Assembly: GCA_002104905.1 (NCBI GenBank)
Contig: MCFE01000078.1
Span: forward strand, 1 to 64,000
Source: Basidiobolus meristosporus CBS 931.73
Taxonomy: Eukaryota > Fungi > Basidiobolomycota
Direction: 5' to 3'
Length of the DNA: 64,000 bases
Part shown: one piece after another, positions 20,166 through 28,522 of the stretch
Position numbering within the stretch: the stretch's first letter is position 1
Layout: every line of letters starts with the position of its first letter
Notes under the pieces: model-generated
Databases searched by the model: none
Seen by the model: the letters and a program-made list of their open reading frames with translations, nothing else
Told to the model about the DNA's origin: nothing
Made by a program: the position numbers and the translations under genes

Positions 20166-21051
<886 letters not shown>

Positions 21052-24034
21052 TCTAGAATATATTCCCCAACCCCTTTCATGATTCATGTCGCCAGCGGGT
21101 TAAGATAGCATACTACAAGGCAGCCAACAAATTTGATTTTCTTTGTATCGTAGATACCATTACACACCTCGTAATATATGAAATTAACTTAATCTCCCTC
21201 ATGTGCTTGAAGTTGTATAAGGACAGCTACACAATAGAGTATTATTTCCAAAGCTGGAAACATCCTAAATTTCGCAGATCCAAATTAGTCAACGAAGCCA
21301 ACCACCGCACATGGCTCGGCAAATAGAAATGAGAGAATTCGCCAGCGCACTCAATTCACCTCGGGTGTCTAAGAATATAAATTCTACACGATTTGAGATC
21401 TGCGAGGTGTCTTCTGGTGAAGGCCCCAGTTCGGGATCAGCAAATTGGGATCAAAACCCGACCTGTTGAAGAATAAGCCGTACCGCTGAAAATAAACGAA
21501 TACACAAACGCAGTAGACAGAGGGCCGAGGTTGGCCAGCCAGTCACACTCTCCGTAAAAATATGCGGATGATTTGAACAAGCGCCCTCTCGGTATTTTTT
21601 AGAACTGGAGGATACAAAACCATTTGGCGTTTTTTCTGATTGGCAGAAGTGCTGGGCAGGTCAAGATAAACGACAGGTCTAACCCGATACTGGTGTGTCT
21701 CTGCCAAGAGGATTAGCTGAAGGAGCAATGTGAATGCGAAGGGCCATACAATAGGCTTCTGAATGGAAATCACGCTCGTCAGACTCATCACCATTTGTTT
21801 ACAATAATACTCCGATTAATTTCTGGCCATTGCTTGCAAAGATACCTCACGTTCCATTTGACATGTGACTCTCCAATAAGTAGTTCGTTCAGGAGTGTGG
21901 GTCATTTCCCGAAGTCGCCACACAAATTGGATTATTGATGAAATCTCTATTCACCAATTGTGTTGATAGATCATATCTGGTTGTTTACCAAACGATTCGT
22001 AATTAAGTTTTGATGGAAAATATTCTCATTCGTTGGCTTAATAAATGAAATATTCTTCTGGAAAACCGGTTCAAATGAAATATCACATGAATCAGATAGG
22101 CGCGGATTGTCAGATTGGATTGATAGACTCCATCGTGAATGTGCTAGCCCAGTCTGCTAGCGAAGCAGGACACGGGTTAGGCCACCGCCCTCATGTCAGC
22201 GACAGCCGATTCACGCTCAGATACTTTGAGCAGTGGTTGACGGTGCGTCATCCAGGTGGAATCCTTCGATCTAACAGTGTGCACTTCGGGATATGCCAAC
22301 TATGAGGTCAGGATGATGAAGATTATTAGTCCCTGCGATATTTTAGGAAGAAGCATCGAACAAATGCAGCTTGACTCTATGACTTGGTTGAATATGGAAA
22401 GTTTGACCATGGCCAATTTTGAAATGCTGGGTAGCTTTGCGCTCCAGAAGCCACCCTTGAGCCGATTCTAGATTGGGATCATGTAACACCCATCCGAAAA
22501 ACTAAGATTAATTGCATGCAAAATAGGTCACCGGCTTACAACGTAGCTAGTCCAGAATCGGCTTAGATTGTATGAGTGATAACAGCATTGATTGTTTCCA
22601 GCAATATTCAGGCTATTATAAGCACCCCAATACGATCATTTTTACCAAATGCTGTAATTAAGTTACGCTTTTAGCATGAAGATAACGCTGTCGAATATGC
22701 TAAACGATACATTCCGCTTACACAAGAGTGATTGGATGCACAATCTAAAGGGTGAATACTGTCTAGTACATCTAAATATACTTGACCCCCTCCTATGTCA
22801 AAAATAAATATAGCTCAGTATATATTAGTAGTCGCACGAAATATACCTAGAAATGATTACATATCCGGATCTACATGGGTAGGGTGCCAATCTACTCAAG
22901 CCACCTTCGTTAATTTTGGCAATAGAGCTATGGAAATTTGGCACTGATGATTGGGAAGAAGCATAAGGAAGGTAGATGCTCTGACCTGAATATCGCTCCT
23001 GACGCTCGTCCACGGCGATTGGCATCATTCCAGGTTCTCTAGTCACCGTCACTTGAAAAGGTAGTTGTCGGGATTCAATCTGAATGACCCCCGGGCGAAT
23101 CAATTATTTACATTTACTTTCCAATAAACTTGGCTTTGAAGGTGCTTCATTTTCCTATTTGTTAGACGGGAGAGTAGCACGTTTGTTGATTACTCGGATT
23201 TTACTTGGTAGATTCCGTGTATACGAGCCACAAGTAGCCCATTTGAAACCTGAACACTGTCGAGTGGTTTTGCAGCTACCTGAGGCGAGGCCTTGAGCAT
23301 CATCATCGACTATGCGGATACGACACAGGTGCCTTTGGTTGCCTATCATGTGTGCCACCTGCCATTTCTCGCCCGCGTCAAGGACTCTGGCATTACGGTG
23401 AGCATCAGATATATTTGGGTCGATGTAGCATCCACTGGTCAAAATGGTGCAAAGCTCTATTGGGGACGGATTCTCCAGCCGCGGGGCCTGGCAACGGAAA
23501 CTTGTCTTTGGTACATCATTTTCCCATAAATTCATGCTCAATAGAATCAATACCAGCGGATCAGAGGTCAGGATCCTTCTGATACTCTAATGGTAGATCC
23601 GCACCATGTTCTTCAATCCGTAGACCATGGTCAGATTGATAATTCTGAGGGCAGAAGTGACTTTTTTCCCAAATCAAGGGAATGACCAGTATTAAAAAAT
23701 CAGTCTGTCCTGTCCTAATGGGTAAGTGATTGGCTCAATCTTCCAAAAGAAAACACGTAAATGGTTGGCGTAGCATACATGATTAAACTTATCCGAGTAA
23801 GCCTATACAGGTACAAAAAAAAACTTCTATGGATTCGATTCGAGACTGTGACAACCTCTGAATACTTAATTGGATTGAAAGTGATTTTTAGATGATGGCT
23901 TTCGATCTTCCTGATTTATAAAGAAGTCGATTGCCTCTAGAGCGGAATAATTCCCTGATCATTGAGATACATCAGATCATCTTTCAATTCACAGTGCGGA
24001 AAGATTCCTGTGAAGAAGCGAGTGTTCATTTTCG

Positions 24035-24945
24035 ATGTTATTGAGTACTGGCGAAAAGCCAGGTCGGGGAATATGGAAGCCTCCCGAGACGAAAAGATTG
24101 ATAGAAGTACGAAGAGAGCTTGACGACCTTTTCTTTTACACGAAAAAGAGAATAGTTGACGAGCAGTGGCAAAAGGTGGCGGAGCGTCTACAAGCCTCTG
24201 GCTTCAATAGAACCATGTTGGAATGTAAAATAAAATGGAAAAATCTACTTCAAAAGTTCAAGGTATGGCCCCTGACCATTTCACGAGAGTTTTAGGCTCC
24301 ACTTAGAGATGACTGGACTCGAAGAATCGGACCTGCTTTAACCGCGACTTCTTCTAGGAAACGCTTCAACCTGGATATAACGGCCCGTCATTTCCCTTCA
24401 GCGAAGACATGCAATGGTACGCAGCAAGATTATCCAGGGAAGGCAAGGAAGAGAGCTCAGAAACCCCAACCAGGGAGGGGAAAAGGCAGTCTCCGCCAGC
24501 CGGTGAAAGCTCACACACCTCTCATGATGCTCGCGCATCACTTCCTCTAATTGAATCTCGCAACGTATCTTCCCCTCGTGCTGCTCATAAGCTTTCCACT
24601 CCTCTTACACCGCAGGGAATAAGTGAGCCTCCACATGGGGATGCCAATCTGAAAAGTATACACTCAGCATACATGCCTACAAACGCATCCTATCAGGATA
24701 CTGCCGGATCGATGGATCCGCTGCCAGTTGAGCCCTCGGCAATCCATTATTCTAACCAGCCATCCGGATCAAGATCACCCCCGTTTCACGGCCACCAATA
24801 TCCAACCGTTTCTTCGCCCATTCCGATGTCTAAACGGCTTAAACCTACAAGATTCGAAGAGGTTTGTATATTTCAATCGTTTTTCTATTCATTTCCATGA
24901 ACTCCCCATTTTGATATATAGATCTTATTTAAAGTACACACGTAA
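24035..24945 (+). CDS. Trihelix / Myb-SANT-like DNA-binding protein; may instead be the 5' half of a fusion with the downstream GS-like gene
   Basis: WKPPETKRLIEVRRELD..F..KKR..EQWQKVAERLQASGFNRTMLECKIKWKNLLQKFK | ETLQ..FPFSEDM matches the trihelix pattern. Intron 24263-24357. Ser/Pro-rich exon 2 ends at a donor after 24861 (KRLKPTRFEE). The stand-alone model ends ILFKVHT* at 24945. Confidence 0.8.
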
Positions 24946-25140
24946 TGCTCCATATTGTTGCTTTACGCCCTTTATCATGACAAATATTCCACCAACGAGT
25001 ATGATACTTGTAGTTGGAGTTCGGATTAGCATGATTGTCACCAGATGAATCTGCGAGTCTCACTTCTATTCTTGATCTGAATTCATCACATACTCTGCTA
25101 CCTCATCACTCTAACCACGCCACATATTTCTATTTTTCAG

Positions 25141-26917
25141 TTCGAGCCACTTCTATCCTCTGTTCGTTATGACCCGCTGGAGGTGCAAAGGATGAACGAG
25201 ATCCTCAAAAACGATGAGCGCGTTAAAGTGGCAGGCATCGATATAGACGGCGTGCTACGGGAAAAGATCATGGTGAAAGCCAAGTTCTTGTCGATGCTTT
25301 ATGATGGCTTTGGTAGGAGCACACATACTGTGAAGCACGAGTTTAGAACTAACTCTGTCCTACAGGCTTCAGTGGTACTATCTTCGGTTGGGGCGAAAGG
25401 GAGGCATCTTCGCTGGGGTCGGAGTTTGAAGGTTGGTCCATCGTTTTGCCTAGTAAGTAATTCCTCAAACTTAGTCCATTAAAGCATACAGCTACCTCGT
25501 TGCGAAGGTGGATCTCGGTACCTTCCGAAGGATCCCGTGGGAAGAGAATCTTCCTTTCTTCCTAGTGAAATTTTTCACCAAGGAGGGTCAGCCAGTGAGC
25601 GTGTGTCCACGTCACATCCTAGGGAGGATCATTCATGAGTATCACTCGATGGGATTTGAGCCTTTGTGTGGTGTGAAGTACGAGTGGTACAACTATAAAG
25701 GTAAATTTTATCTACCCCCGAGGCCAAGTATTGCCTTCTTACACCCTCGGAAACCATCCTTGAATAGAAACGCCGTACACTTTACGAGAAAAGAATTTTA
25801 AAACCGAGCCGCTAACTTCGGATCTGTTCAATTTGGCATTGGATGATTTTCAGGGGAAAAGAGCGTATTTCAACGAATTGTTTCAGATGCTTCAGAAGTT
25901 CGACTGCCCACTAGAAAGCCTTTGTAGCGAAGTTGGTAAGCTATAAATGACGTATGTCTAGTGCGAAGTAGTGGTTCTGATTGGCCTCTCTATCCGCATT
26001 TGCTTGCTGCATCAGGTCCAGGTCTTTACCAAGGGGCACTTCATTATGGCTCCGCGCTAACAATGGGAGATCGCGCGCAACTGTTTAAGGTTGCAGTGAA
26101 GCAAATAGGGCTGCGCCAGGGCATCATGGCCTCATTCATGGCTAAGCCACATATGAGCATACCAGGATGCTCCGCACGTTTGCATTTCTCCTTGAAAGAT
26201 ATTCGGTCAGGCAAAAATATTTTCTCCAGGCGGAACGAGGTTGGAATACGAGAGCCACCAAGAGACGGTTTGGAGGATATGAGCCAGGTGATGAGTTGGT
26301 TTGTTGCTGGGTTGCTGAGAGGACTGCCCAGTATTTTGGCCATTCTGGCGCCGTATGTGAATAGGTAAGCACTCCGGATTTTCTGAGAGCAAATCGATGG
26401 TTTAGTAATCATTTCCTCAAGCTATAAGAGGTTAGGAGAGAATGAATGGTCGCCAATGATGGTTTCATGGGGGCACGAGAACAGAAATAGCGCCATTCGT
26501 ATCATCAGTTCACAAGCCGACGCTGAGTCTACTAGACTAGAAGTGGTGAGCAATGGTTTTCATGAGCATTATTTTCAATGGCCTAACAGGTTTTCGTAGC
26601 GGGTGTCCGGGGCTGATATGAATCCCCACTTGGCGCTTGCTGCTTTGCTGGCCTGTGGTATTTGGGGAATAAGAAACAAGCTTGCCATTCCGGTTCCTCC
26701 TAGCTCCGGAGTTATTGCCGGTGACTCGAGAGCCGAGAGATTTCCGAAATCGCTCTTGGAGGCAACGCAAAAAATGTTGGAGCCTGGAAGTGTGGCGCGA
26801 GAAGTACTTGGTGACGAATTTATAGATCATTACGGAAGCACACGACTCCATGAATGGAAACTGTGGGAACGAGCTATTACAGACTGGGAAACCAAACGGT
26901 ATTTCGAAATGGTGTGA
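25141..26917 (+). CDS. Glutamine-synthetase-like (GSI / gamma-glutamyl ligase family) protein with substituted metal ligands; 5' end uncertain
   Basis: VKVAGIDIDGVLREK, FGFSGTIFGW, DLGTFRRIPWE, CPR, GPG, ASFMAKP, APYVNSYKRL, WSPMMVSWGHENRNSAIRII, RLEVRVSGADMNPHLALAA, LGDEFIDHYGSTRLHEW..W..AITDWETKRYFE. Several introns; the frame is open upstream of ATG 25192 back to an acceptor at 25140. Confidence 0.9.
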
Positions 26918-28522
26918 TACAGGCAATTTGACATTGAAAAACTCCATCCATCCAATTACATTATTGTGCATGTTCTACATGAGGCCTTCTTGCAACAGCT
27001 TGACTGGTATTTTTGAATCATTTCTCCACTCAGACCAGATATCGACCATTCTTTCAACTTCGATTTTGATTACCACTTTCCCTAATTCTATATACTCATT
27101 TTCTCTATGTATAAACTTTTCAAAGATTTTTGATACGATTCATGACGTTTAATGATTACTGTGTCTTCTTTGTATTGTAGTCGGGGTATCATGCGTATTC
27201 CGAACGCTTTACGCAAATATATAGACCAACAAATCGTGCTGTACTTCTAATATGGAGTAGCCTACTTGCTCCAAAAACGAATACTGTCCTCGAATTGTGT
27301 AATCACTGAAAAGATAGAACCTCATCCCCCCTCAGATTTGTATAACCTTATAGAACTATACAAGTGAAAGATATTGGAAGATTTGGGTCATTTCCTACAT
27401 GTCTCATGTTTCCACAATTCTGAAGAGTTGGCAATTAGGTTTGCAAAATTAACTCCAATATTGTTGTAAAATGTTGACCTGTGTGAAACCACGAAATACA
27501 AATGATGAAGTACTAAGCTGGCTCAAACTAAGATATAGTTGCAGATTCTGTAAGCTATCAAAGGCAAGAATCCAACAGGACAAAAAACAATTACTGGTCG
27601 ATAACGTAATATTAAATATGTAAAGAAAAGGTTCGACTTTGTGGTGTCGTCAGGTATCAAGTCATCCCTACATATACATAAAAGAATATGTACCAGCAAT
27701 CCTCGGAATCGTTGTACTTTAATCACACAAAAATCGGAGCTGCTAGGCTCCTAGTACATAATTTGCCACATATATGGCCCTATCTGAGACTACAACCGGA
27801 CCTGATGTGTCAGTATAATAATACGAGAGTTCACTCTGCATAGTCTTGAAGTGTACTTTTATAATGTCCACAAAATCTTTCAATAGAAGGTGCGCTACAA
27901 TCTCCTGGTCTACCTACAGTAATCATCAAAATTCCATTGTTCATTTTTCATATATGGTATTTGTCGATCAACTCTGATTGAAAGCACAAAGCTGGTTTGT
28001 CAGACAATGAAAGGTTCCGTGATCATTTTTGCAGTAGTTCTATCATGTTCTTTTCAATATCAGTTGGTAAATTCAGTACGCGTTTACCAACCAGATGGGA
28101 TGATCTAAAACCAAGAGATCAGATGGTGCACAGCTCCGGGAGAGGTATGAGCGAAGTGTTTGAATACCTCTAACATCTCTCCGTATCCAATCCTTTTAAC
28201 CCTTGAAGCTTACGCCATGTCCCTGGGTTTGTTAAGAAATACTGGTCTATATATCGTTTCTCCTCTAATAAATTTCTGTTTAATACGCACTTCATGTCTG
28301 GGTAGGATGCGGAGGGGGGTTGGGTTTCTGGCAAATGAAGAATTGGTGTAGTGTAGATTTCTTACGATCGTTTGGCTGATAAATACGCAAATCTACAGAA
28401 TGATTTTTTTTCCACAACTGAATCATTTCCATCAAAATGTGCAAGAGTCATTTCTATTCTAGATGCTTGGTATCCAAGACAGGAAATATCTAGCTTTGTC
28501 CTGTTAGTTACTTAGTTACCTT

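Follow-up and report, generated by a model that had tools for sequence, protein, structure and literature searches.

The first 64,000 nucleotides (nt) of contig MCFE01000078.1 from Basidiobolus meristosporus CBS 931.73 (hereafter the window; all coordinates are on its + strand) contain, at positions 24035-26917, what is almost certainly a single nine-exon gene and not two. When position 24861 is joined to position 25141, an in-frame open reading frame of 714 amino acids (aa) results, in which a trihelix domain is followed by a Ser/Pro linker with a KRLK patch and then by a domain resembling glutamine synthetase (GS). A reading made from the letters alone (the sequence-only reading) had proposed one in-frame protein across this joint; the joint was sustained, and only the estimated length of about 690 aa was too short. 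Both domains lie in one transcript and one frame, as is seen from a spliced contig, a fused paralogue in the same genome, the exon structure in Basidiobolus ranarum, a frame conserved at three loci and purifying selection across the seam.

The signals for this joint are present in the DNA as the sequence-only reading had described them. Exons 1 and 2 together encode 244 aa ending in KRLKPTRFEE, and a GTTTGT donor follows directly, in phase 0, after 24861. The acceptor TTTTTCAG stands at 25140, with TTCGAG beginning at 25141 and a CTAAC element about 30 nt upstream. From 25141 the frame is open and reads FEPLLSSVRYDPLEVQR ahead of the first Met at 25192; that this upstream frame is GS-like, as had been noted, is backed by codon-position conservation relative to B. 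ranarum. Short GT..AG introns of the eukaryotic type occur throughout the gene region. The junction intron (24862-25140, phase 0, GTTTGT..TTTTTCAG) measures 279 nt as against 53-95 nt for the other introns of the gene, and it would introduce in-frame stops if retained.

Direct evidence for the joint came from run X3, in which one contig of 2275 nt (depth 308) matched the window in nine blocks with 0 mismatches. The contig lacked all eight GT..AG introns, including 24862-25140, which it skipped exactly, so that 24861 was joined to 25141 at the very junction that had been predicted. Its length equals the 2145-nt coding sequence plus a 130-nt 3' untranslated stretch (26918-27047; record 3 ends at 27047). 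Depth in X3 was zero inside the junction intron (24870-25123) and over the annotated tail exon at 24922-24945. Since only 2 nt are ambiguous at the 24861/25141 joint, a shared repeat or a misassembly cannot explain it. Given that the contig is free of introns and that the run has no intron or spacer coverage, we conclude that the contig derives from spliced RNA.

The public gene models tell a different story for this copy. The annotation of the locus on MCFE01000078.1 is split into a 251-aa gene with Myb_DNA-bind_4 and a 460-aa protein, P0152, with Gln-synt_C only, and the junction intron is there divided among the tail of the upstream gene, an intergenic spacer and the 5' part of the downstream gene. 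The terminal mini-exon of the stand-alone trihelix model (24922-24945, encoding ILFKVHT and a stop) is unsupported: when considered as a candidate exon, it had no junction or coverage in X3 and no counterpart at the loci of B. ranarum (L001) or the paralogue (L002). In organism C, a closer relative at about 92% nucleotide identity, deletions of 3 nt and 1 nt fall inside it, at 24928 and 24933. P0152, annotated at L003, which is the window itself, is the GS model of this very copy and 99.8% identical to it; the sole difference is a 7-aa insert (GWSIVLP), which stems from an annotated 32-nt intron at 25453-25484. This intron is contradicted by the X3 contig, which uses a 53-nt intron between exons 4 and 5 (25432-25484), as do the paralogue and B. 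ranarum.

The two other Basidiobolus models cross the junction. P0001, a 620-aa B. ranarum protein at 91% identity, was obtained by an exhaustive HMMER search with a GS exon (window 26018-26362), and P0151 and P0152 were found by searching with P0001. P0151 is a 714-aa paralogue of B. meristosporus CBS 931.73 on another contig; it is annotated with PF13837 plus PF00120 and aligned with the joined product of the window at 79% identity over 714 aa with zero gaps. The annotation of one genome thus treats its two copies differently, one as fused and one as split. The P0001 model spans the same junction, but its first residue is a Met inside exon 2. About 120 nt ahead of that start, at L001:5602-5829, there is a complete trihelix exon 1 with a proper donor, and the public model is therefore truncated at its N-terminus.

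The window, the paralogue and the B. ranarum gene were then compared as three loci, with the proteins mapped back onto the DNA. Orthologues that are always two unlinked genes, which the sequence-only reading had held to be incompatible with a fusion, were not what was found; the paralogue and the B. ranarum gene are fused and have the same exons. The nine-exon structure was common to all three loci (228, 504, 172, 66, 216, 168, 349, 124 and 315 nt, with 501 nt for exon 2 in B. ranarum), and the junction intron occupied one phase-0 site in each, between (F/Y)(E/D)E and FEPLL. Its length was 279 nt in the window, 83 nt in the paralogue and 207 nt in B. ranarum. A conserved internal element, such as a promoter or a micro-exon, was sought in the three junction introns; only the splice sites were conserved, and the introns were otherwise unalignable. 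Where the annotation has the GS start Met, the paralogue has Val and B. ranarum has Ile. In the 51 nt upstream of the annotated GS ATG, identity to B. ranarum was 0.94, 1.00 and 0.24 at the three codon positions, and the adjoining intron could not be aligned. The RVKVAG motif lies 26 residues after the start of exon 3, within the 15-27 residues seen in most stand-alone orthologues; the annotated split model leaves only 9.

Synonymous sites were saturated between the copies, and for this reason most ratios of nonsynonymous (dN) to synonymous (dS) divergence are not given. The dN values were 0.04-0.06 for the trihelix, 0.04-0.09 for the seam, 0.06-0.10 for the GS module and 0.18-0.31 for the linker, in which LPVEPSA, HQYP and VSSPIPMSKRLKP formed conserved islands. 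These values point to strong purifying selection in three anciently diverged copies, across the seam as well. In organism C, a contig covering the whole locus carried 12 indels, and all 12 fell outside the nine exons. Collectively, the comparative results rule out a chance open frame and make two independent genes very unlikely. A relative sampled in run X4 and labelled with the species name of the source run showed only about 92% DNA identity over window positions 23600-27235, and all of its indels were outside the exons.

Residues 1 to about 100 were assigned by profile and structure matches to a GT-1-type trihelix DNA-binding domain. Most of the domain is encoded, together with the start codon, by exon 1 (24035-24262), which is in the X3 contig and alone scored 52.5 bits against PF13837 (Myb_DNA-bind_4; 6.8e-14), the cut-off being 27. 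The paralogue scored 54.3 bits over residues 13-95 (profile positions 3-87 of 89). The Arabidopsis GT-1 structures 2jmw and 2ebi matched residues 13-79 (E 4e-9), and three spaced Trp residues are found at W14, W45 and W68 (24074, 24167 and 24236). Intron 1 (24263-24357; 95 nt, GT..AG) is absent from the X3 contig and lies at an equal position at L001 and L002. Exon 2 (24358-24861) completes the trihelix with its fourth helix, continues with about 145 aa of Ser/Pro-rich linker and the block VSSPIPMSKRLKP, and closes with RFEE in phase 0.

An AlphaFold2 model of the paralogue placed helices at residues 19-50, 55-79 and 91-105 and gave a confident GS fold; residues 97-247 were below 50 in the predicted local distance difference test (pLDDT). 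Residues from about 100 to 244 are accordingly modelled as a disordered linker (31% Ser plus Pro) that ends in the conserved block VSSPIPMSKRLKP. The KRLK patch within this block (24832-24843, exon 2) is a possible nuclear localisation signal. The trihelix and the Ser/Pro linker with KRLK, both named in the sequence-only reading, thus find support in the Pfam and GT-1 matches and in the conservation of the block.

Residues 245-714 are a type-I glutamine-synthetase fold of the FluG/GlnA-like kind. PF00120 matched P0152 with 246.7 bits over profile positions 2-344 of 344, and the module matched the structures 5dm3, 11zs and Bacillus subtilis 4lnf with E values of about 1e-43 to 9e-41. None of the NCBIfam equivalog cut-offs for GlnA, type III GS or gamma-glutamylputrescine synthetase was reached (157-179 bits against 429-650). 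An amidohydrolase domain was not found by Pfam, which returned only Myb_DNA-bind_4 (plus a sub-threshold Myb_DNA-bind_6) and Gln-synt_C.

The module begins in exon 3 (25141-25312), where the annotated start Met (25192-25194) is the internal residue 262. Exon 4 (25366-25431), present in the X3 contig, encodes part of the N-terminal beta-grasp region. In exon 5 (25485-25700), the E-x-E metal motif has Lys at 25676-25678 for its first Glu and retains the second at 25682; exon 6 (25768-25935) has Cys at 25923 for a conserved His and retains Glu at 25929 (E212 equivalent). In exon 7 (26016-26364), Gln at 26030 stands for the E220 equivalent and Arg at 26177 for the H269 equivalent, with the H271-equivalent His retained at 26183. 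Exon 8 (26422-26545) contains the NSYKRL and ENR motifs and retains the E357-equivalent Glu at 26540. Exon 9 (26600-26917) encodes the C-terminal part of Gln-synt_C and the stop codon (26915-26917). Pfam matches to Gln-synt_C were obtained across these last three exons (5.6e-18, 7.8e-9 and 4e-20, respectively).

The metal-site motifs were compared by alignment with 4lnf and 5dm3. The six ligands of the two metal ions in true GS are E129, E131, E212, E220, H269 and E357 in the numbering of the Salmonella typhimurium enzyme. At these six positions, all three Basidiobolus copies have K, E, E, Q, R and E, whereas 54 homologues have invariant E, E, E, E, H and E; the replaced ligands are E129 by K, E220 by Q and H269 by R. 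A neighbouring conserved His was also changed to Cys and a conserved Gly to Ala. The degenerate metal sites that had been suspected are thus fixed in three of three copies. The equivalents of R321, R339, R344, R359 and H271, which hold nucleotide and glutamate in true GS, were retained. In a tree of GS sequences, the Basidiobolus clade was nested in a fungal GS-like family, with a stem of 0.99 changes per site compared with a median tip of 0.22 and with very short Basidiobolus tips. The long stem and short tips on this tree fit rapid change in the past and constraint thereafter.

Among 97 relatives of 341-1085 aa, P0151 was the only one with both domains. The other fungal members were 404-533 aa long and had Gln-synt_C alone, with the exception of one 708-aa protein of a lichen fungus that adds only PF01738. 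When the trihelix part was searched against proteins 393-1250 aa long, only P0151 itself was returned, and no DNA-binding domain was found in the long matches of the exhaustive search (P0002, P0019, P0032, P0054 and P0095). Of these, P0002 (4424 aa) has six and P0019 (2757 aa) three tandem units of Gln-synt_N plus Gln-synt_C, and P0054 (1434 aa) combines RasGEF with a partial GS; the three are probably merged gene models or tandem arrays. At three loci, in Thamnocephalis, Lobosporangium and Dispira, no trihelix gene stood beside the GS-like orthologue, and an unfused precursor arrangement was therefore not found there. Because the searches are limited in sensitivity and genome coverage, the restriction of the fusion to Basidiobolus applies within what was searched.

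The trihelix-GS architecture was not found in the literature searched. The sequence-only reading had stated that such a fusion is undescribed; this holds for that literature, although a fused model of the paralogue with both Pfam domains already sits in public databases. A cluster in the ESM Atlas (Candidatus Omnitrophota, about 555 aa) has HTH_17 plus Gln-synt_C in 28% of its members and may be an independent fusion of a DNA-binding domain with GS.

The gene probably originated in the Basidiobolus lineage by fusion of a trihelix gene with a GS-like gene downstream of it, the spacer between the two becoming the junction intron. As regards the surroundings, an upstream gene for a 192-aa Ras-family GTPase is common to the three loci (window 20166-21051, L002:3024-3854 and L001:1616-2523). 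Downstream genes for GIDE/RING, RPA_C, Myb and WD40 proteins are common to L002 and L001, whereas the window copy differs (PseudoU_synth_2). The paralogue resembles B. ranarum (85.6%) more than it does the window copy (79.4%). Given the downstream difference, the window copy looks like a translocated duplicate of an old segmental duplication.

Given that half of the metal-binding residues are lost, it is probable that an enzyme fold was turned into the regulatory domain of a transcription factor. We hold with moderate confidence that the GS module is non-catalytic and serves as the regulatory part of a nuclear DNA-binding regulator. The protein would bind DNA in the nucleus through its trihelix, and the GS module would work without ATP- and metal-dependent ligation. 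Regulation may come from a small ligand (Glu, Gln, ATP or an amine) bound in the retained pocket, from assembly into the ring typical of the fold, or from the two combined; in such a ring, several trihelix domains would extend on long tethers, and the avidity of DNA binding would be set in this way. The sequence-only reading had proposed a nitrogen or amine sensor coupled directly to DNA binding. In this more specific form, which we offer tentatively, a dead GS ring binds Glu, Gln, ATP or an amine and thereby switches the DNA binding of up to twelve trihelix domains through the long tether.

Within the regulatory account, a purely structural module is a less likely variant: the GS part would be a hexameric or dodecameric scaffold that multimerises the trihelix without sensing any ligand. 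The GS-I fold is known to be obligately oligomeric, and a long disordered tether suits multivalent contact with DNA, but a pure scaffold would not need the residues of the nucleotide and glutamate pocket, which are invariant, and dN over the whole C-terminal domain is as low as that of the DNA-binding domain. It is improbable, though by no means negligibly so, that the fusion is real and its GS module is still an enzyme, namely a gamma-glutamyl (amine/polyamine) ligase of altered or single-metal chemistry that is brought to DNA or chromatin by the trihelix. Such activity would be in keeping with the retention of all the equivalents of E131, E212, E357, H271, R321, R339, R344 and R359, with Lys and Arg side chains that might replace a cation, and with a family that is as similar to gamma-glutamyl-amine ligases as to GlnA (NCBIfam GGputSyn 4.4e-46, below cut-off). 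Set against this, the three replaced positions are invariant in the 54 homologues, bacterial ones included, the adjacent conserved His and Gly are altered too, both metal sites are required for phosphoryl transfer according to established GS enzymology, and the long stem branch suggests a change of function. That two independent neighbouring genes (the 251-aa trihelix gene and the 460-aa P0152) are joined in frame only by coincidence or rare read-through is very improbable, for the split GenBank models, the in-frame Met at 25192 and a gap far longer than the other introns have to be set against an X3 contig that is the only one over the locus and has the joined form, an 83-nt paralogue intron that leaves no room for a promoter, a Val at the paralogue's supposed start, coding conservation that is continuous over the seam, and the contradiction by that contig of both the annotated tail exon and the 32-nt intron.

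Several points nevertheless weigh against a single-transcript, non-catalytic regulator. Three metal ligands and the substrate-binding arginines remain, so that altered chemistry is possible. Confidence in the modelled trihelix is no more than moderate (pLDDT 45-74), as this part is covered by just two sequences. The kind of library behind X3 is unrecorded, and that it is cDNA follows from two things only, the missing introns and the want of coverage in introns and spacers; the run comes from the study that also produced the likely source runs of the assembly, and none of six public runs is recorded as RNA. Rare isoforms are lost in contigs, so the window copy, with its Met at 25192 and the longest of the junction introns, may also yield a minor stand-alone GS transcript. 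The X3 contig starts at the A of the ATG, which leaves the 5' end of the transcript undefined. As the contig shows no 5' untranslated region, it must be clipped or else the transcript has a very short leader, and the first AUG may be poorly placed for scanning.

The regulatory reading of the Basidiobolus protein can be compared with several known systems. In Bacillus subtilis, feedback-inhibited GS controls the DNA binding of the MerR-type factors TnrA and GlnR. Common to both is a type-I GS fold linked to a DNA-binding protein, a route by which transcription could respond to nitrogen status; the Bacillus circuit consists of two proteins acting in trans, with an active GS and a MerR-type helix-turn-helix (HTH), whereas the Basidiobolus protein is one polypeptide of a eukaryote, has a trihelix and has lost half of the metal ligands, and its regulatory coupling is one that we infer. 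Aspergillus FluG and plant NodGS are fusions of an amidohydrolase with a GS-I-like part and have a developmental or regulatory role, not one in bulk glutamine synthesis. They share with the Basidiobolus protein a eukaryotic GS-I-like domain at the C-terminus of a fusion and differ in their N-terminal partner, an amidohydrolase in place of a DNA-binding domain. Lengsin of the vertebrate lens is a catalytically inactive dodecamer with a structural role in the lens; there, too, a class-I GS fold was kept under selection after catalytic residues had been lost, but lengsin has no DNA-binding domain and its loss was independent.

The closest relatives are stand-alone GS-I-like proteins of Mortierellomycota, Mucoromycota, Zoopagomycota and Dictyostelia, named 'glutamine synthetase/guanido kinase' or 'type-1 glutamine synthetase 2'. 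They are 44-50% identical over the full GS module and have the same N-terminal helix and motifs, and the Basidiobolus sequences nest inside them; unlike these, they are 455-530 aa long, lack a DNA-binding domain and keep all six metal ligands intact. With the plant GT-1/GT-2 factors the protein shares PF13837, the match to 2jmw and a recognition helix of the pattern C-x-x-K-W-K/R-N-L-L-x-x-F-K. In the plant factors, the partner of the trihelix is a coiled coil or a further trihelix and, to our knowledge, never a GS fold; the Basidiobolus protein, moreover, is fungal. The bacterial HTH_17 plus Gln-synt_C proteins also have a DNA-binding domain N-terminal to a GS fold and are a structural neighbour of P0151 residues 183-714. 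Their DNA-binding fold is a different one, they are bacterial, and HTH_17 is found in just 28% of the cluster, and they are best regarded as a lead only.

As far as we know, GS folds regulate transcription only in trans or are reused as non-enzymes without a link to DNA, as in lengsin and the C-terminal domain of FluG. In Basidiobolus, a DNA-binding domain and a probable GS-like pseudoenzyme form a single polypeptide, and the combination has long been kept and is present in two copies in one genome. Three public gene models are corrected as a result: at the window locus, two models stand for one gene and include a spurious terminal exon of 24 nt and a spurious 32-nt intron, and the model for B. 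ranarum lacked exon 1. Trihelix factors, which have been studied almost only in plants, are hereby extended to an early-diverging fungus, and the protein offers a simple, testable system for how an enzyme fold turns into a regulatory domain in a eukaryote. If the ligand-sensing version is true, the bacterial GS-TnrA/GlnR circuit would have a cis-wired counterpart in a eukaryote, and the protein would be a one-component sensor of nitrogen or amines that is specific to Basidiobolus.

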